32,964 nt of DNA, from positions 1-32,964 of the forward strand of contig NW_005434534.1 of assembly GCF_000315625.1 (NCBI RefSeq). Reading direction: 5' to 3'. A model generated the notes under the pieces. The model was not told the DNA's origin and ran no database searches. It was given only the letters and a program-made list of their open reading frames with translations. The translations under genes were made by a program, and so were the position numbers. Shown one piece after another: positions 395-28,700 of this stretch. Positions within the stretch are counted from its first letter, which is position 1. Each line of letters starts with the position of its first letter. Source of the stretch: Guillardia theta CCMP2712 (taxonomy: Eukaryota > Protista > Cryptophyta).

Positions 395-469
395 GCACTT
401 GAGAAGCAAATACGAAACACGACTCAGAAAGATGATGTCGACGAGGAGGGAGAGGACGCGGCGGCGTGA
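395..469 (+). CDS. probable last exon of a gene entering from the left edge (ALEKQIRNTTQKDDVDEEGEDAAA*)
   Basis: ctgac...gggcag acceptor, then a 24-codon acidic reading ending in TGA at 467-469; convergent with the next gene. No family recognised. Confidence 0.35.
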   Translation, partial: ALEKQIRNTTQKDDVDEEGEDAAA

Positions 470-620
470 AGGAGCAGAGGAAAGAGAACGAGGGGATGGA
501 AGATATGGAAGAGGAAGCAGGGGAGAGGAAAGAGGATGTGATACAGCTCTGGGTGGCGCAGAGAAATCAGAACAAAGCTATGAGATAGGAGGAGGTTTGG
601 TCTTGAGCACCAGGGCAATT

Positions 621-1489
621 TCAATGTGTAGCGAAACATTTCTTGACGAGCAAACTGACAAACAGAGAAGACATGACGGCAGTGATCAGGTTGTGAACTC
701 CCAACCTGACCCCGAGGTTGCACCTCTGCACGTTACACTGGCACTCTGCGCACCTCGCAAGTCAGGAGAAACTTCACATCCTCCCATCTTCCACGTCACC
801 TGTCACTGTCTTGGTGCACCTGTGACAACCATCACTTCCCCCTCCTCTGCTAACACCCTCCCTTCACCATCCGCTCAAGCAAGTCGTAGAGGTCTTCTCG
901 AACGCTGTGTTGGTACAGTAGTTGGCTGAGTAGAACGCGAGCGCGTCGCTCCCTGTATCCGTCACCGGCCATGGCACGCAGCTCTTGTACTGGAACTCCG
1001 ACTGGAACCCATCCTTTGCCGTGATCACTTCGTGCTGTTTCCTGGCAATAAGTCAGGACATCACAACTGCGCGGCCTCGAGAGGCACCAGCAGTAGAGGC
1101 ATTGGCTCAACACTCCCTGACACTTGGCACTCGCTGCACTCCCTTGTCACTTCGGAGCTCGCAAGAATCAGTCGCAGGCTTGCTCGCCTGGATATCCTCC
1201 GATGTCAAGGGAAGGGTGTCGCCAGTACTCAGCTTCTGTGCAGGTGAAGCATTCTGCATCGTCGCTGATGATCACAGCAGAGCGAGCATAAGCAAACACC
1301 ACCTATCGGCTGTCGGCATTTATTTCTTCCTGCGCATGGAGGCGCCCAGGCTGAACTCGTTGCTGCAGCATTGTTAGGGGACAAGCAATCGAGGCTCTTT
1401 TTCGGCAGACCAGTGGTGGTTTGTCCCCAAGCTTCCAACAAAAGGCAAATAGTAATGACGAGGAGAAAAATGAAGCTTCTACTCAACAT
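621..1489 (-). CDS. secreted, probably GPI-anchored Cys-rich protein with Ly6/uPAR (three-finger, Quiver-like) cysteine pattern
   Basis: Hand-spliced exons 1489-1303 (optional in-frame 48-nt intron inside), 1253-1188, 1133-1088, 1041-868, 819-800 and 745-621; all phases are compatible. Product: signal peptide MLSRSFIFLLVITICLLLEAWG...IECFTC...KC...QCLYCWK...YKSC...YC...TC...WC...ECQCNVQRCN followed by hydrophobic tail LGVRLGVHNLITAVMSSLFVSLLVKK. Gene model is strong; the family call is by pattern only. Confidence 0.7.
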
Positions 1490-10000: not shown

Positions 10001-10769
10001 GAGGGAGGGCTGATGAAGGACGAGATCCAAGAGGATGAGGAGAAGGATCAGCTCTTCTACTGGCCCACCCCCGCAAGCCAGCTGATGCCGAGCTCCTGGA
10101 TCGTTACAAGGACCAAGACTTGCTCCTCCTCTCCCTCAAGCACCAACTGCTCGCCCCGAGGGTAATATCTATCCTCCTGTTCTTCCCCTTCTGCTCCTCT
10201 GCCTCCTCCCCTCCTTCATTTCTCCTCTTCTTCTTCTCCCTCGCTGCTGTCCTTGTAAACATTTTGCAGGAATACCAAGAGTATATCCCAGCATTCAGAA
10301 AGCCGGTGACCTTCGTTTCTTGCTCTCCCCTCCTCCCTCTTTTCTGACCTTCTCCCTCTCTTCTCCCCTCTCCCTTTTCCACCCTCATTCTCCCCTCNNN
10401 NNNNNNNNNNNNNNNNNNNNNNNNNNNNNNNNNNNNNNNNNNNNNNNNNNNNNNNNNNNNNNNNNNNNNNNNNNNNNNNNNNNNNNNNNNNNNNNNNCCC
10501 CCCCCCCCCCCACACTAAACTCCATCTCTCCCTCTCCCTTTCCTCTCCCTCTCTCCCTCCCCCCCCCCCCCCTCTCTCTCTCTGGCCTGTTGTTCACTCT
10601 TCCTCTGCAGACTGTCAGCCTGGCGTCAGTGCAGGAGGGAGACATCGGGCCCTGGAGGCGCAACGGAGGAGTGGAGACTTCAGCTGACGTCTGCCTCGAG
10701 GTCATCCAGTCCAGACTCGCGATGCAGAACACGATGATGGACGCCGGGTGGCAGTACGGGCTAGCGTGA
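7091..10769 (+). CDS. large multi-pass membrane protein with a Cys-rich extracellular loop, family unknown
   Basis: Phase-consistent small 5' exons from ATG 7091 lead into a long GC3-rich exon ending at 9156, then intron 9157-9268, exon 9269-10161, small exon 10270-10305 and final exon ~10611-10769. TM1 is KFLFIIYTILSFIFTLYSQIATL; a ~290-aa Cys-rich loop follows; further hydrophobic helices are GVLTAILVILIILLALGSLLLLPAIVLFLV and LASMVNLVFNIVVIFL / LLIISSILQTLTIFLVV. The 3' part is uncertain (possible frameshift, N gap). Confidence 0.7.
10398..10497. other. assembly gap (100 N) within a pyrimidine-rich intron
   Basis: Direct reading. Confidence 0.99.
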
Positions 10770-18671: not shown

Positions 18672-21600
18672 CAAGGAAGGACAGAAGGAGAAGGGGCAGA
18701 AGGAAGAGGGGCAGAAGGAGGAGGAGGAGGTAGGAGCAGGAGCAGTAGAGGCAGGAGGAGCGGGGCAATCGGGAGTAGGAGCAGGAGAAGGGGCAGGATG
18801 GAGGAGGAGGGACCTTGGCATGAAGATCTTTCACGTCCTCTGCATGCTCGTTCACTCGATCAATTCTCTGCTGCAGCTCGTCGAAGCGGCTGGTGAGCTC
18901 TTTCACTTGACTTCTCAACTGCTCCACCTCTGAACCGCCAGGGCGAAGCTCCTCCCCTCCCCTCCTCTCCTCCTCCTCCTCCTCCTCCTCCTCCTCCTCC
19001 TCCTTGACAGGCGATGGCTCTGACGAAGCTGCATTAGGATGGTCTTCCTCCTCCTCGAGGGACTGGCTGGTTTGGTGATCAGCAGCCAGTCCGTTGGCTG
19101 TGAGCTTGTCTGGGAAACGAGAGTCCGGCTTCCTCCTGACCTTGAGCAGGTCCGGATGATTCATCAGCATCATCAGCTGCAACTCTTGTCAACGTTTGCC
19201 CCTCCCTCCCTCCCTCTCCCTCTCCTCCCTCCCTCCCTCCCTCCATAACTCCCTCCCCTCTGGCTCGCTTCCTCTCACCTTCAAGCCCAGCATGGAAGCG
19301 AAACCTGCGCCGTGATGATTCTCTGCGTCCTTCAGGATGCCAGCAGCGAGCTGCCGCTGTAAAGAATGTGCTAAGCAAGCAGATGAAGAGAGAAAGTAGC
19401 GAGAAGAAGAGATAAGGGAACAGCACAGGACAGCACAGGGAGGTAGGGATAGAAGGCTTACCTGTGCAAAAAGGAGGAGCTGGTGCCATATCATATGATG
19501 GAAATCCTCATACCTGAAGTCAAGAAGCTACTCAGCTCTCGCCTAGTCCCTTGTGCTCTCACCCAAGTTCGCCCTCGTCGTTGCTGAATTTCCCGTGCGG
19601 GCCCATGCAGATCAAGTTGAAGTCATCGGGAGACAAGTAGATCTGCAATATCGTAACGACGACATCTGAAACATGCAGAAAGAGCAAAAGCAGAGCAGCA
19701 GCGGTGGTGGTGGCGGCAGCGGCAGCGGCAGCGGCAGCGGCAGCGGCAGCGGCAGCGGCAGCGGCAGCGGCAGCGGCAGCGGCAGCGGCAGCGGCAGCGG
19801 CAGCGGCAGCGGCAGCGGCAGCGGCAGCGGCAGCGGCAGCGGCAGCGGCAGCGGCAGCGGCAGCGGCAGCGGCAGCGGCAGCAGCAGCGGCAGCAGCAGC
19901 GGCAGAAGCAGCAGCGGCAGCAGCAGCGGCAGAAGCAGCAGCGGCAGCAGCGGCGGCAGAAGCAGCAGCGGCAGCAGCAGCAGCAGCGGTATTCGTCAAA
20001 ACCTCTTTAGCGGTGTGATGGAGCCACAACTTTCTGAGCCCTTCGCTCATCTCCTGGAAGGAGATGCGCCCGTTGCCGTCTATGTCAAGTTTCTGCTTCC
20101 TCCCTCAGTCGTCCTCATGCTCGACCCCTCTTATATCCTTTTCCTCCCCCCATCCTCTTCCCCTCTGTCATCCTTCTCACCTCGTAGATGGAGTGGATCC
20201 TAGCGTGCAGATCCTGCACAGACTTGAAGCTCGCGAGCTCTCGCAGAAGAGGGTCGAGAGGTCCATCCTTGCTCATCTTGAGTTGCTGCATTCAAGTCAT
20301 GTTCCCCCTCCCTTCTTCCCTCGTCCCTGGTGCTTCCTCTGCTCCTCTTACTCATTTCCTTCTTCACATTCCCTCCTTCCCTTCTTCGCCTTCCTCCTCT
20401 CCTCCTGCTCCTCTCCTCTCCTTCACTGCAATTCCTTCTCCTCCTGCTCCTCTCCTCTCCTTCTCTGCATTTCCTTCTCCTTTTACACTGATGTCACTCA
20501 CCCGTGCGATTTCAACGTCCTGCTTCTCCTTCTTCATTTGCTCTTGCGTATTCACAAACTGTTACAAGATCAGCAAACCGTGATGAGAAGCAGAGATCGC
20601 CTTCTCACCTCATCGAGCAGAACAGCAACGACGATATTCAACATGACGATATTGGTGATCAGGAAGTAAGAGATAAAGAAGAAGTTGATCTTTCAAGCAA
20701 GGTCAGCGGCCACGGGTGGAGAACCAAGAAGGTGACAAACCCCGAAGTCATGGGACAGATGCCCTGTGTTCATGGGGCGAACAACGTCTGTCACCCAGCC
20801 ATCGCCTGTTGAGATTTGAAACATCTTCCTCCCGGTGTCACTCGCAACCACATCGACAGCCACGTCATACCGTGAAGAGAGCGAGCGAGAACGACCCGAA
20901 AAGCTCCTTGTCAGAATCCCCGAAGATGATCACCGCCATCACCTGCATGCATCGCTCAACACTCGTCGCCCTCCACCGCCACGCTCCTCCTTGCCCCTCC
21001 TCCTCCTCTCCCGCTCCCTCGCCCGGTACCGAGAAGAGCGAGGACACGAGGAGGAGCACGCCGAACGCGTTGGCCACAGGGATGATGGCGGAGAGAAGCG
21101 ACTGAATGATGACGCGGAGGGACTGGAGGCGCTTGAAGAGACGGACGACCTGTAAAGCAGCAGGTCAATCCGACAAGCCCAACGCGAGTGAGAGAAGGGA
21201 ATGACGGAGAAGGGAGAAGGGAGGGGGCAGAGGACGTAGGACGGATGAGGGAGGGAGGAGGGAGAGGGGGGGGGGGGCGGGGGGAGGAGGAGGGGAGGGA
21301 GGGGAGAGGGGGGAGGAGGGAGGAGATACAGAGGAAGCAGAGAAAAGGAGGAAATGAAGAGAACCCGGAAGGTCCTGACAAGACGCAGCAAACTGACTCC
21401 CGGCAGGTTCTCGATGCCAAGAGAGATGAGAGAGATCATGACGACGGTGAAGTCAAAGACCTGAGAACGTGGTAGCTGAGCTATGGCAGACAAGACCATG
21501 ACATCAGATGAAAGCTTACATTCCATGAGTCAGTGATGAACTCCTTGAACCAGTGAGCCGTCATGTTGAGAAGGAGCTCACAGGTGAAGATGATGAGAAA

Positions 21601-22386
21601 AAAGAGCTCGAAAGCATCAAAGATGTGAGCAGCATAGCTTCCGTTCTCCGGAAGGATCTCAAAGTTGATGATGTTGATAATGAAGTTGCAGAAGATGAGA
21701 AAAGCGACGAAGAATTGAAAGAAAGGGATGTCATATAGAACTTTCGAGTAAACTTTCGCCAAAGTGAAGAAGGAGGAGTTGATACGATTCTGTCTCTCAA
21801 TCTCCTCCTTTCGCAGCCTCTCAATCTGCTCAATCCATAGCTCACATTCCTCTCGTTCGCTTGCTCGCAGAGTGTAGGCCCTCCCACTATTGAACCCATC
21901 GTGCACGGTCTGGATCTCAAAGATCCTCTCGGAAACTCGAGGCGCGCGCTCTTCCTCCGGCACCTTCTCCTGTTCCATCTCGCGGATGCTGCTGATCTGA
22001 TGCAACTTCAAGCCTCTGTTGTCGTAGAAGAGCGCGTCCAGCTCTTGCCGCTGCACGCTCGTGATCTCGTGTAAGGGGATCATGTCGGTGATGTCGGACT
22101 TGCTGCTGCCAGCAAAGAAGACATGTTGTGCCGTCAGCACAACATACCTGGTGTTCCACGTCATGTCGATGGTTTGTTTGTCCAGATTCGCTTCGAGCAC
22201 ACGATCTCTCTTTGGGGGGAGTTTGCCCCATGTAGGCTTCCATTGTCTCCTCTTGAGATCCTTGGTCGCAAGCTCTCTCAGCGACTCGAGAGAGAACAAT
22301 GTAGCATCTCCTTCCATTTCCTCCTCATCGTCACCAACCGTTGATTCCTCCTTTGCTCGTCGATTGATCAACATCACGGTTGCCAT
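18046..22386 (-). CDS. single-domain (6TM) voltage-gated Ca2+/Na+-type channel with N-terminal PH domain and C-terminal EF-hand + coiled coil (paralogue 1)
   Basis: PH: WNTRYVVLT...DMIPLHEITSV...IFEIQT...GRAYTLRASEREECELWIEQI. S1-S3: FQFFVAFLIFCNFII...FTCELLL...DSWN|VFDFTVV. S4: LLRLVRTFR|VVRLFKRL. Pore: LFGSFSLALFT|MFQISTGDGWVTDVVRPM (TGDGW 20795-20809). S6: FFFISYFLITNIVMLNIVVAVLLDE. EF loop DIDGNGRISFQE (20051-20086). Distal 3' exons less certain. Confidence 0.9.
19695..19990. repeat. (GCGGCA)n / (GCA)n compound microsatellite inside an intron of channel paralogue 1
   Basis: Direct reading; lies between the EF-hand exon and the IYLSPDDFNL exon. Confidence 0.9.
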
Positions 22387-23533: not shown

Positions 23534-25688
23534 ATGCGACCATGGTTGATGCTGTTGACGATGGTGGTGGCGATGCAGTGCGAGGAGAGGAGGAAGGGAG
23601 AGAGGAAGCGCCTGCTGCAGACAGACAACAAGCTCGCCCATGACAAGCTTGCCTACAACCTCACAGACTGCCCTTGCGGTAGAGCCCTTGGCGCCTATGG
23701 CGAAGCTCTTCCGGACCTCAAAGTCCTCCTGTCGTCCCTCCTCGCTGATGGGGATCATGTCGTCGTCGTGGGTGAGCCTCCTCCTCGTTGTCGTATCCTC
23801 TGGACTCACATGCTTCAGGCATTCCATGCCCCGATGTCGTTCTCCATGCCTCCAAGGCTGTTGGTCTGAAGGGTCGGGTGATGGTAGTCGACGCCAGCCC
23901 GGACAGGCTACGCAAGTCGCTGCAGCTGAATGGCAACTGGAGGAACGTGCATGTGCTGAGGACTTGTGTCGTGATGCCGCAGGAGCAGAAGTTTGAGAAT
24001 GTCCTTCATCCCTCTCACGCCGACCCGTGCTGATTGAATTGAGACAGGTGTCGGGACGAGCGCCTCCGTGTTTTGCTGGCTACGTTGGTCATGCTTGCGG
24101 AGAGAATCACCTGCCCACACCGCTCGATGCTCTGCTGCCAAGCTACGAGGCAGAAACATCGACGACGCCTGCCCTCTTGCTTCTCTCCCTGTCTCCCCGA
24201 GAGCTGCTGGGAGCGCATGCAGGGTTGCGGGGGATGCTACAAGTCGTTTCGTTTTCGCTTGTTTTCCATTGCGACTATGACGCTCAGGCTGTGGTGGTCG
24301 AGCCGATGAGCGCGGCAGTGATACAGCGGGTGTTGACGTCGTATGAGGAGAGAGGAGGGTGTGTCTTCTTTCATGTGGGCAGACATTCCGCCAGTCCCTC
24401 CGGCCTCGAGGCAGACGAGTTCTACTACCTCCCTCCTCCTGTCCATGTGCTCGCTGTGCCGTCACAGTCTCGGTGGTGCCTGCAGTCTGACATCTTCCAG
24501 CTGTCGCAGAGCTCATTAAAAGGAGCTGCAGCAGGGTGTCTCCTCCGCATCCCTTCCTCTACGCCGGCGTCAGACCTTGGTATCGTTCTCAAGCGCGTGT
24601 TTGTTCGCTGCGTACCGGAGGTTGCAAGGTTTGGCACCAACCCCAGGATGTTCTTCAGGCGCATCTCCTTCCAGCTTCCTCTTCCTGCTCGGTCTAACTT
24701 GGGTTCTCCTGTCCCTTTCGCCTCCCGCTGGACAGTCGGGGAGCTGCTGGAGAAGATTCGGGTGAATCAGTTCCCTCCAGACTGCAGCTCTGCTCGCCTC
24801 CTTCTCTTCCGGTATGTTAACGCGGAGCTCTCGGGGCATGGCTCCATGTTCGGCCACCTCAGCGTCGCGCTCAACGCTGCGATCATCACGAGGAGGACGC
24901 TGGTGGTGGATGAGAGCGCCGCATGGCCCTTCTCCGACGGATGTAAGAGCAGCGAGTGCGCCTCGGGCTTCATGTCGACCTACTTCCTTCCTCTCTCCTC
25001 TTGCCGGGCTCCTTCCAGGCAGGAGGCTCATAACCTTCCTCTCCTCTCAGAGGACTCGTCTGCTCAGCGCGTGGTGCTCGTGCTCGATGACTCGGAACTC
25101 CCTCGGTACCGGACGAGACTCCCGGCGTTGCTGCAGCCCGAGCAAGCAGAGCTCGCGATCCTCGAGTGGTATGCAGCTCTCACCGCCTTCCTCCTCCGCC
25201 CCAGCAACCGGCTGGAGAGAATGATGCGGGAGGAACAGGAATCGATGAAAATCCCTGCTCTCTTCCTGGGCCTTCACATCCGACGTGGACACAAGTGGGT
25301 CGAGACTTCATCGCAGCCTCTGGGGGAGTATCTTCGCTTCGCTTCCATGCTGGCTGACAGGACGAGCGTGCGAGATGTGCTGGTGTGCACGGAGGACGAG
25401 GAAGTGATTGAGGAGCTTGAGAACGTCAAGACTGACTTGCGTTTCCACTACACCAACAGCAGCAGGCCAGGCTACCGAATCTCCATCCCGCATGCCATCT
25501 CTCTAGGCATCCTTAACGCTTCTTCAGAGAACCGCGTGTCGCTTGTCAACCTCCTCCTCCTCGCAAGGAGCGCGGCGTTCGTGGGCACGTTTTCGAGCGG
25601 GTACAGCAAGCGAGTCTTCGAGCTGATCGCAGCCCAGCAGCAGGCGCTTCCTCTCTTCGTCTCCTTGGATCACGTCTGGAGTCCGTGA
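23534..25688 (+). CDS. secretory-pathway GT23 (FUT8/NodZ-like alpha-1,6-fucosyltransferase) with N-terminal degenerate FkbM-like methyltransferase domain
   Basis: GT23 blocks: GHGSMFGHL...RRTLVVD, YFLPLSSC, WYAALTAFLLRP, LGLHIRRGHKWVE, VLVCTEDEEVIEEL, LLLLARSAAFVGTFSSGYSKRVFEL. The N-terminus has a signal (MRPWLMLLTMVVAMQC) and LLADGDHVVVV|...SKAVGLKGRVMVVDASPDRLRKSLQLNGNWRNVHV. Confidence 0.8.
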
Positions 25689-25743: not shown

Positions 25744-28700
25744 CTAGGGGCTCGGGTTTCGTTCCTGGTGGTCGGGGAGGTTGGCGGGGCGGTTGGACTT
25801 GAGGATGGCGGAGGAGGTGCTGAGAGCCTGCGCGAGCTGAAAGCACTGCTCCCTCGGCGTCGTCTGGTTGGACCCGCTCACAAGCACCAAGTCGCTCTGC
25901 TCAAGGTTGAGAGTCGCCACGGCTCTCGAGATCTCCTGCTGAGCGTCCTGCTGGGAGATCTTGCGGATATTCTCGATGGCCTTCTTGAGCTGCTGGAACT
26001 TGTTGATCTGCTCGTTCCTCCGCTGGCCTCTCGGAGGTTCGCTCCTCCTCCTCGCTTGAACTTTTGAATTCCCTTGCCTCGGCTCCTCCGTCCTCTCCCT
26101 CCTCCCCTTGTCTCGAGCCGTCTCTTCCTGCTGCGGTTTCTTCTTCTCGGTTTCAAACTGCTTCTCATAGAGCATGTTCATCTTCTGCTTGTTCATCTTC
26201 TTCTCGCTCCTTCCTCCCCCATGCCCATTGCCCTTTTCCGCGTCCTCCCCGCGCGCTGACCCTTCGCGCACATTCCGGCTGACCTGCTGGGTGAGGGATT
26301 TGAGCATCTTAGAGAGGGTTGCGATCCTCTCGTTGATTCTCGCCACGTCCTCTTCAAGCTCTTCGGGGACTACCTCCTCCTCCTGCATGCTCTCGAACTC
26401 GAGGAAGAGCAGCTTCATCGTCAGGAACATGCTTCTCTGTACGTCGTCGCCCTGCCATGCTCGTGTCAGCCATGCAAGAGGAGAACATCTCTTCTTGCCT
26501 CCCCCATGGAGTTGAGAGTCTCTCGCTGATTGTAGCATTGAAGCTCTTTGACCATGATCACAGCGAACTGCTCCCTGTCGATCTCACCATCCTGCCCCCA
26601 CGTCACTGTAGAGAGCAACGCCTACGCTAATCCCCTCCTCCTCCTCCTCCTCCTCCTCCTCCTCCTCCTCTCCCTCCCCTTGTCGCCTTTCCCCCCTCTC
26701 TGTCTCTCTCGTCGGCTTCTCCCTCACCTCGTTGCACAGAACTCCTTCCTGCGTGATGCTGCAAGTGCAGGTCACAAACAGACAAACGACCGTTGAAACT
26801 TACAGCGAGAAGTCGTCCTGTGCCAGCTGGACTCGAGTTGGGAGAGGGAGCAGATCAAACGCCTCGTTCATTGACTCCATCGTCAGGTACCCTGACTTCT
26901 CGATGTCCAACTTCTGCAGGGGCCCATCTGAGCCCAGGCTGACATATCAAAGTAGCGACGCACCTGGAAGAGCTCGTCGATGCGATGGAGCAGATCTTCT
27001 TTGTCGTTGAACTTTGACAAGGACTCGATCACGGCGTCCAGTGACCCCGTCGCTCGCGCTGCCTGTCGCTTCCTCTGCAGCTCCTCGTCCGACTTTTCTT
27101 TCTGCAGGTCAGGCATCAGCTCAGTCTCACGTCAGCGCCGCTCGCACAGCTGCTTGCTTCTCTGCCGTGATGGTCTGAATCAGCTCGTCGAGGAGAACAG
27201 CAACGACGACGTTGACCAGGATGACGCTCGTCTACAGAATCCGGTAAGCAAAGCAGCACTTGTATTCGAGCATGGTGCACACCACGAGGACGTAGGAGGA
27301 GAAGAAGAGGGCGACGCCTCGATCAAAGCCTCCTTTCTCTGCCATGTAAGTCGGCCTAGCGACGTAGGACGCCCATGAGTCTCCCTACGGTCTGTGAGCG
27401 GAAGGAGGAGCGGGAAGGAAGCAGCTCACAGTAGCGATCTGAAACATGGTGAAGACAGAAGCGCTCATGCTCCCGAAGAATTCTTTCTTAGAAGTCCTGA
27501 AACAGAGTGACGCCGCGACTAGGCCTGCTTCCCTTCTCACCCGTAGAGGTTGGTTGCGAGGACAGCATAGCAGCAGGTCACCACCATGAGCAGCCCGAGA
27601 GCAGACACGACGGGCCGCATGGCCTTCATCAGACCCCAGAGGATCCTCCTGAACGATCGCAGACGACCGAGAACTCGGAGGATGCGAAGGATGCGAATGG
27701 GCCTCAGCATCTGTGACGAATCTCAGCGACGAGCTTGTTGACCCTCAACCTCACAGTGATCTGAAAGAGATTCGCAAATACTGACAAGACGATCACTAAC
27801 GCGTCCATGGAGTTCCAAACTTAAAACGTTGATGTCAAAGCAAGGAAAATCAAATGCGGATACAAATCTCACTGTGTATCACGAATTTTCGCCTCCAATC
27901 GTTGAAGTGAGCAGCAATTAGGATGAAAAATTCAAACATGAAAAAGAGACTGCAAGCAATGTTCACAGCTCTCAAGATCCCTGCGCTTATGAGTCGTGTG
28001 GTTTTACTCTTTGACGAGCTCGACCTGAAATTGTCTTCTGCTTCGTATAAATCCAAAATGTAGGCCAACAGAATGACAGTAGAGCACACATAGATATAAA
28101 TCTTGTTCTTATAGAGTTTGAGCGAGTTGATTTGCAACCATCGGGTCGAACTTCCCGCGATGTCTTGTCGTTCAACATCACTCTTATGCCTTTTAATTGC
28201 GGCCTTGTATGTTTTGGTCAGTGTACGAAACCAGGTCTCATATTCATCCTCGTCATTTGCTTGAAAGATGTAAGTCCTGCCATCCAACAGTATCACCGCA
28301 GGAATCGTTGTTCACAATGTCACCTTCCGTTGTTTATTCCCATCTCATCAGTTTGAATGACGAAAGTCAAGTGGGTTCTCTCTGACGCGTTTGATCCTCT
28401 TCGCTTCGATTTTCGCACTGATCGTCGCTTGTTGTTGTCAGGACCTTTCGTGATGTTCTCCAGGTCTCGGAACCGACCGACGCTGACAATCTCATGTAGT
28501 GGGATTTTGTCCGTGACCAAGTGCTGCAAGTCAGGGTTCGCAAAGTACAAGTCTGTACTGGTGAGAACAGCATACTTGGGGTCCCACGAGTTGGAAGAAC
28601 TGCAAACAAGTACGTGAGAGAAAGCAGGCGCAAACAAGTCAGCCGTCTGCTGTCATCAGCAGCTTGTGTGATATGGCACATATGCTTCACCTGCTCGTCT

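Follow-up and report, generated by a model that had tools for sequence, protein, structure and literature searches.

A Guillardia theta gene that probably encodes a surface protein with a predicted Ly6/uPAR three-finger domain

Introduction

Three-finger proteins with a Ly6/uPAR (LU) domain are treated as a hallmark of animals, as in CD59, uPAR, Lynx1, Quiver, the ectodomains of the TGF-beta receptors and the snake toxins, and members of the Quiver/Sleepless class bind and modulate ion channels (Shaker, nAChR). Animal LU proteins are binding modules or regulators of other surface proteins, and their domain is described as having ten plesiotypic cysteines, bonded 1-5, 2-3, 4-6, 7-8 and 9-10, with an asparagine that invariably follows the tenth (PMC6600238). 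A 2026 survey with hidden Markov models (HMMs) reported three-finger proteins in every animal phylum and inferred an origin at animal multicellularity (PMC13719153), and we have found no literature that places LU domains in a protist. Here we analyze a gene on the minus strand at positions 621-1489 in the first 32,964 nucleotides (nt) of contig NW_005434534.1 from the cryptophyte Guillardia theta CCMP2712, a stretch that is referred to below as the window. We find that this gene probably encodes a type-I surface protein with a predicted LU three-finger domain, as one of two G. theta copies within a cryptophyte family.

Results

Gene structure and splicing

As judged by comparison with related proteins, 621-1489 is an intact seven-exon gene of G. 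theta (Table 1). No single frame is open from the start at 1489 to the stop at 623-621 and splicing is needed; once the seven exons are joined, the minus-strand coding sequence, from the ATG at 1489-1487 to that stop, has 570 nt and specifies 189 amino acids (aa), which comprise a signal peptide, an ectodomain with 14 cysteines, a hydrophobic anchor and a short KKC tail. Five of the six introns are GT-AG and the third is GC-AG, and their lengths of 46-54 nt fit the introns of 44-85 nt in a transcript-supported paralog from the same assembly.

The splicing is carried by comparison with an independent protein. When the 54-aa product of exon 5 was compared with 1.84 billion representative proteins it retrieved P0001 (E 3.9e-21), a complete open reading frame of 185 aa from a marine-protist transcriptome (MMETSP). 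The spliced product matches P0001 from end to end, with 150 of 189 residues identical (79%, E 6e-118) and all six junctions colinear, and the match crosses both the GC-AG intron (..GGYP/ASAKC..) and the micro-exon (..SGW/CTKTVT/ECQC..). The product is colinear with this transcript-derived protein and also with a paralog that has its introns elsewhere, and it keeps nearly all of the conserved family columns; by these three comparisons we consider the splicing to be far beyond chance.

The individual junctions agree with this. Removal of intron 1 gives ..QTTTATSSAWAPPC.., which is colinear with ..QTSSAWSPPC.. in P0001; its retention would add 16 aa and one unpaired cysteine found in no homolog. 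P0001 backs the 48-nt intron 1410-1363 over two other solutions in this region, a first intron of 81 nt with its end at 1330 and an intron of 27 nt that begins at 1356, and both of these were rejected. For intron 3 the GC donor was fixed at 1187 and every AG acceptor was tried by script, which gave three in-frame, stop-free models, of which the one with the acceptor at 1133 alone yields ..GGYP-ASAKC.., the same as P0001; the paralog reads ..GGFP-LSAKC.. here. A non-canonical CT donor at 1171 was dropped in favor of this donor and acceptor pair. The stretch CLYCWK...FQYRSC is unbroken in the paralog, which has no intron at the site where the 46-nt intron 4 cuts the window gene, and the spacing there is equal (CLYCWK, 14 aa, FQY). 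The joining of exon 6 is matched by WCTKTVTEC, unbroken in P0001, and by WCSKTVTDC within one exon of the paralog.

The original prediction, which had been made from the letters of this DNA, proposed a Ly6-type protein that becomes coherent after joining six or seven micro-exons. Its coordinates match the coding span exactly from ATG to stop, every motif that it listed is present (the signal peptide, IECFTC, a lone cysteine in SAKC, CLYCWK, YKSC, further cysteines, ECQCNVQRCN and the hydrophobic tail), and the splicing is essentially as it proposed, as borne out by the comparison with P0001. The exons number seven, and only one of them (819-800, 20 nt) is a true micro-exon. We add to that model the GC-AG form of intron 3, the start of exon 2 at 1362 with an N-terminal cysteine pair before CFTC, and the KKCFATH end.

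The window product was not found at lengths of 102-324 aa in a collection of 5.8 billion proteins, and the gene appears to be unannotated or badly mis-modelled in public sets.

A cryptophyte family with two members in G. theta

In all, 13-17 homologs were found, word-indexed profile searches giving 15-17 proteins, and 13 sequences were aligned. Those that carry a species name are all from cryptophytes: G. theta, Geminigera cryophila, Baffinella frigidus CCMP2293, Cryptomonas curvata and C. paramaecium. The 14 ectodomain cysteines are nearly invariant in the alignment, among them both cysteines of the pair encoded by exon 2, and two additional loop cysteines are present in most members and missing in the subgroup of the window protein, P0001, P0007 and P0008. 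The conserved blocks are GGYPASA, CLYCWKQ, DGWSSxFQYKSC-PWP and WCTKTxTEC-C, and the C-terminus consists of C-x-C-x4-C-N, x3-R-x4-[HQ], approximately 19 mostly hydrophobic residues and [RK]KC-x(2-4). The window protein retains 45 of the 47 columns conserved in at least 90% of the family and all 15 family-conserved cysteines, and its two differences (W to F and R to K) are conservative and also found in P0001.

One family member, P0022 (MGB1605843.1), stands in NCBI under the title 'MAG: hypothetical protein [Promethearchaeia archaeon]' and comes from a contig of 1,079 nt; in all likelihood this contig is eukaryotic and was wrongly binned with an archaeal metagenome-assembled genome.

The G. 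theta assembly comprises 87,145,349 bases in 669 contigs, and the window opens contig C140. Searched with single exons or the family profile, it yielded the loci on C140 and C148 and no further paralogs, a match of 12.7 bits on C92 being rejected as noise. The C148 paralog, P0006, is the NCBI entry 'hypothetical protein GUITHDRAFT_166248 [Guillardia theta CCMP2712]' and is also in MMETSP. Its protein is colinear with that of the window gene and its intron positions differ; in addition it has an 18-aa exon with an extra cysteine pair, which the window gene lacks. In the public model of the paralog the acceptor lies 12 nt farther upstream than in ours, and SSIV is thereby added before NCLYCWK.

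The predicted fold

An AlphaFold2 model of the full-length protein, built on the 13-sequence alignment, had a predicted local distance difference test score (pLDDT) of 76.7, with the best blocks of the domain at 85-93. A model of the ectodomain by itself (pLDDT 78.5, predicted template-modelling score 0.67) has six strands in three hairpins. When the ectodomain model was compared exhaustively with 48,161 PDB representatives by VIA-align, ranks 1 to 30 were taken exclusively by three-finger proteins, headed by GPIHBP1 (Z 7.5, root-mean-square deviation 2.6 A, 78 of 83 residues), TEX101 (Z 6.7) and CD177 (Z 6.5). Also among these 30 are Lypd6b, bucandin, TGF-beta receptor II, PSCA, AMHR2, uPAR, irditoxin, mambalgin, C4.4A, Lynx1, SLURP-1/2, Prod1, CD59 and activin/BMP receptors, and unrelated folds begin only at rank 31 (Z 3.6). 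The top four structures did not change when the full-length model was used.

Other methods led to the same group of proteins. Foldseek placed GPIHBP1 first (E 0.04, probability 1.00, target-normalised template-modelling score 0.65), followed by uPAR and C4.4A, its E-values being weak. A shape search of the ESM Atlas led to Quiver (QVR), GPIHBP1, Activin_recp and LYPD1 clusters. By the language-model features of P0001 the first match was 'Protein quiver' PF17064 (0.93, 190 of 256 features), and QVR made up 49 of 100 matches, the best score with the LU families excluded being 0.79.

The signature motifs of the LU domain are found at both ends. The opening C-[YF]-x-C is kept in all 12 members that cover this region, and the domain closes with C-x-C-x4-C followed by a nearly invariant asparagine. 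This final cysteine and asparagine (C153-N154 in P0001 numbering) are both conserved in at least 90% of the 13-sequence alignment and correspond to ..RCN.. in the window protein.

Membrane anchor

The signal peptide, probably a cleavable one, has its hydrophobic core at residues 4-20 after a basic n-region, and an equivalent segment is present in all full-length homologs. The original prediction took the protein for one of glycosylphosphatidylinositol (GPI) type, and at the other end of the protein C-N is followed by small residues, a spacer and a hydrophobic run, a layout that a GPI signal could have. The hydrophobic run is followed by [RK]KC-x(2-4), which hardly varies in the family, and the stalk residues R, H and T are conserved as well. 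Such an end is atypical for a cleaved GPI signal and weighs against it. Cleaved GPI signals are rarely conserved in such a way. Because of this conserved tail and stalk we favor, somewhat over a GPI anchor that stays a serious second choice, a predicted helix that crosses the membrane once and is followed by a short basic tail, with a cysteine that may be acylated.

Surroundings of the gene

The gene lies close to the contig end. An uninterrupted (CTG)n repeat of approximately 120 units occupies 1-365 at the start of the contig, and the assembly probably broke inside this repeat. Four RNA runs were compared with 380-2300. RNA-type contigs from two of them, one of 2,649 nt, cover 394-666 and run past 394 into sequence that is not in the window, behind an AG on the plus strand. 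We read 394-666 as the last exon of a neighbor on the plus strand, the AG being taken as its acceptor from loose contig ends with no joint reported. The 30-nt loose end upstream of this neighbor was not found in the assembly.

Further into the window, a run of N that marks an assembly gap lies at about 10400-10500 within a proline-rich open frame, and a long open frame at 24027-25688 (plus strand) matches the catalytic domain of alpha-1,6-fucosyltransferase (FUT8; E 6e-15). In two neighboring genes on the minus strand (21481-22386 and 27850-28296) the beginning of an ion-transport domain is fused to a PH domain; the adjacency of these channel genes is not evidence for a Quiver-like channel role of the three-finger gene.

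Table 1. Exons and introns of the three-finger gene, its convergent neighbor and its paralog
Feature	Position	Strand	Description
Exon 1	1411..1489	-	79 nt; start codon and signal peptide; ends in phase 1; donor ccactg/GTCTGCCG; matches the P0001 N-terminus
Intron 1	1363..1410	-	48 nt, GT-AG; could formally be retained, being in frame and free of stops
Exon 2	1303..1362	-	60 nt; N-terminal extension with cysteine pair ..PPC..NKC..; ends ..QPI
Intron 2	1254..1302	-	49 nt, GT-AG
Exon 3	1188..1253	-	66 nt; E-C-F-T-C .. GGYP (finger 1), with which the predicted three-finger domain starts; the fold-search alignment begins here
Intron 3	1134..1187	-	54 nt, GC-AG; donor atccag/GCGAGCAA, acceptor GTGCAG/
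Exon 4	1088..1133	-	46 nt; ..ASAKCQGVLSQCLYCW
Intron 4	1042..1087	-	46 nt, GT-AG, phase 2
Exon 5	868..1041	-	174 nt; finger 2, variable linker and start of finger 3 (..FQYKSC..NYC..TTCLSG)
Intron 5	820..867	-	48 nt, GT-AG, phase 2
Exon 6	800..819	-	20-nt micro-exon, (W)CTKTVT
Intron 6	746..799	-	54 nt, GT-AG, phase 1
Exon 7	621..745	-	125 nt; E-C-Q-C-NVQR-C-N, stalk with conserved R and H, hydrophobic anchor of about 16 residues, KKCFATH, stop
Putative last exon of convergent neighbor	395..666	+	RNA-type contigs; its 3' end and that of the three-finger gene overlap tail to tail by 46 nt
Paralog	L002:1164-2211, contig C148	+	Introns of 85 (73 in the public model), 47, 47, 255 and 44 nt

Discussion

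The original prediction was of a possible Ly6/three-finger-like protein in an apparently non-animal genome, and the predicted fold, the motifs, the architecture and the taxonomy all support this. The outcomes that it named as refuting, namely a fold other than three-finger, different splicing or a metazoan contig, were each looked for, and none was found. The contig is not metazoan, as the paralog in the same assembly is a G. theta protein and the named homologs are all cryptophyte. The models proved three-finger-like, with GPIHBP1 and uPAR at the top in Foldseek and the exhaustive PDB search in agreement. No match to a Ly6-type Pfam family was found: for the LU clan (UPAR_LY6 PF00021, QVR PF17064, Toxin_TOLIP PF00087 and Activin_recp PF01064) neither the scan of P0001, P0002, P0003 and P0006 nor that of all 13 members gave a match at E<=10. 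Six-frame scans of the G. theta genome with QVR, UPAR_LY6 and Activin_recp found nothing, and the sole Toxin_TOLIP match (C55:488859-488999, L017:1501-1641; 21.2 bits, at the cut-off) is spurious, as it falls in a cysteine-free frame of an apparent MORN-repeat gene. As these HMMs give no match, membership in the LU superfamily rests on the predicted fold together with the motifs.

Besides this lack of Pfam matches, several observations weigh against the assignment. The family profile found no match at E<=10 among PDB sequences. The structural scores are middling (Z 7.5, Foldseek E 0.04) and come from predicted models on a shallow alignment of 13 sequences. The domain, from Cys48 to Asn158, has approximately 110 residues compared with the canonical 60-90, the excess being located in finger 1 and in a low-confidence linker before finger 3. 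Its conserved cysteines number 12 compared with the canonical 10, and a putative mapping between the two can be drawn from the order of the cysteines relative to the predicted strands. By this mapping the ten canonical LU cysteines would be C48, C51, C73, C80, C83, C105, C126, C150, C152 and C157; two pairs would be left over, C138-C143 as an additional disulfide at the finger 3 tip, where LYPD6 also has one, and C36-C42 as a further one in the N-terminal extension. Regarding the scores, modest absolute values are to be expected for small domains, and what counts in the structural comparison is the exclusivity and coverage of its matches.

These same points bear on the question of ancestry. 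We consider the chances about even that the cryptophyte family and the animal Ly6/uPAR domains are truly homologous, though deeply diverged. The family could instead be a disulfide-rich beta domain specific to cryptophytes that merely resembles LU and shares no ancestry with it, which we regard as somewhat unlikely. Small cysteine-rich hairpin folds recur, and the abundance of the animal family may bias both structure and language models toward it; the absence of any profile signal to LU Pfam families or PDB sequences, the extra cysteines, the longer domain, a different Cys4-Cys5 spacing and a Z below 8 would all be in keeping with convergence. So would the patchy distribution, with named sequences from cryptophytes only, and the 2026 HMM survey had no three-finger proteins in the fungi, the plants and the two choanoflagellates that it analysed (PMC13719153). 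On the other hand, convergence would have to account for the coincidence of signature elements, namely the aromatic residue that follows the first cysteine of the opening C-[YF]-x-C motif and the C-x-C-x4-C-N end with its nearly invariant asparagine, for 30 first structural neighbors that all belong to the three-finger superfamily with near whole-domain coverage, and for an identical architecture of signal peptide, one LU-like domain and C-terminal membrane anchor.

Alternatively, the domain could be a true homolog that was not passed down from an early eukaryote but moved horizontally, from an animal into an ancestral cryptophyte or in the opposite direction. The confinement of the named sequences to one protist lineage, when LU domains are in all animal phyla, points in this direction, as does the fact that the closest language-model neighbors are arthropod and nematode QVR clusters. 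Nevertheless, HMMs fail because the sequences have diverged so deeply, the genes have many introns of cryptophyte style at variable places, and subfamilies with 14 and 16 cysteines are already spread across cryptophyte orders, so that any transfer would have been ancient. We hold transfer to be distinctly unlikely.

A different question is whether the window copy is functional, or a silent or decaying duplicate beside a C148 paralog that alone functions. Two observations on RNA weigh against an active gene: no reads or contigs were found over 840-1545 in the four runs, of which approximately 6% of the one raw run was read, and the single RNA-type contig at 642-840 has low depth, is unspliced across intron 6 and may be read-through from the neighbor. 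A silent copy would also be in line with the lack of the product of this locus in the set of 5.8 billion proteins, in which the paralog is present from both NCBI and MMETSP. Against this, the frame stays open through all seven exons, each of the six introns has usable splice sites, and the family-conserved cysteines (15 of 15) and conserved columns (45 of 47) are kept as described above. Furthermore, an ortholog with 79-81% identity is transcribed in another species, which implies that the subfamily has been kept since speciation, and given the small part of the raw run that was read, the RNA result is absence of evidence and not evidence of silence. A silent or decaying window copy is in our view quite improbable.

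Finally, the name 'EGF-like domain-containing protein' of the Cryptomonas curvata homolog A0A7S0LUL5 (P0014) in UniProt is hardly credible and looks like a pattern artefact, perhaps from a resemblance of the terminal C-x-C-x4-C to the PROSITE EGF pattern, which is our guess, as no member of the 13 has an EGF Pfam family at E<=10, long three-hairpin sheets are predicted and no EGF structure is among the top 50 neighbors.

We favor an LU-type surface protein and suggest how it may work. The protein would enter the secretory pathway and fold with seven disulfides, and it would then be displayed on the plasma membrane or the periplast surface with its three loops exposed for binding. It would be held there by a transmembrane helix with a palmitoylatable juxtamembrane cysteine, which we think likelier than GPI. 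In such a position it could, like the animal LU proteins, assist or regulate some other protein of the surface, be it a receptor, a channel or an adhesion partner.

If the family is a true homolog, the LU domain would not be an animal invention: it either predates Metazoa and has been widely lost, or it passed, in one direction or the other, between animals and an ancestral cryptophyte. The family would then be the first non-metazoan LU family, and one invisible to the HMMs of the published surveys. A conserved cryptophyte family with the same predicted fold, terminal motifs and membrane-tethered layout would challenge the account of an animal origin. If the resemblance is convergent, it would be a clean case of convergence in a complex disulfide fold. 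The gene also shows that genes of this kind escape the present Pfam models and gene-prediction programs in protist genomes dense with introns, and algal cell biology gains a candidate surface-recognition module.

Compared with the known systems, the cryptophyte protein shares its predicted fold with the snake three-finger toxins (Toxin_TOLIP, PF00087), of which bucandin, irditoxin, mambalgin and an alpha-neurotoxin were matched at Z 4.5-5.1. These toxins are secreted and have 60-75 aa and 8-10 cysteines, whereas the algal protein is larger and predicted to be membrane-anchored, and nothing suggests a toxic function. With the TGF-beta, activin and BMP receptors and BAMBI (Activin_recp, PF01064) it has in common a three-finger ectodomain, a single transmembrane helix and extra non-canonical disulfides, all three being predicted in the algal protein, and TbRII, AMHR2, ALK1 and ActRIIB are all within its top 30 structural neighbors. 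The cryptophyte proteins differ from them in a cytoplasmic tail of 5-8 residues and the lack of a kinase domain, and the Activin_recp HMM gave no match in the scans of both protein and genome.

The best solved structural neighbors are the vertebrate single-LU proteins (GPIHBP1, CD59, Lynx1, PSCA and LYPD6B; UPAR_LY6). For the LU domain of GPIHBP1 the ends of the aligned range are consistent with first cysteine falling on first cysteine and last Cys-Asn on last Cys-Asn. Identity in the structural alignments is 13-24%, however, with no HMM match, the cryptophyte domain would have two extra disulfides, and the vertebrate proteins have proven GPI anchors. From Quiver/Sleepless (QVR) it is set apart by the lack of a match to the QVR HMM, by 12 cysteines and an N-terminal pair compared with 10, by a longer finger 1 and a longer linker before finger 3, by the conserved [RK]KC tail and by its cryptophyte host. 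The cryptophyte protein and Quiver/Sleepless share a layout of signal peptide, one cysteine-rich three-finger domain, predicted in the case of the alga, and C-terminal hydrophobic segment in approximately 150-190 aa, together with the C-[YF]-x-C start and the C-x-C-x4-C-N end, and QVR is both its top language-model neighbor and among its top Atlas shapes.

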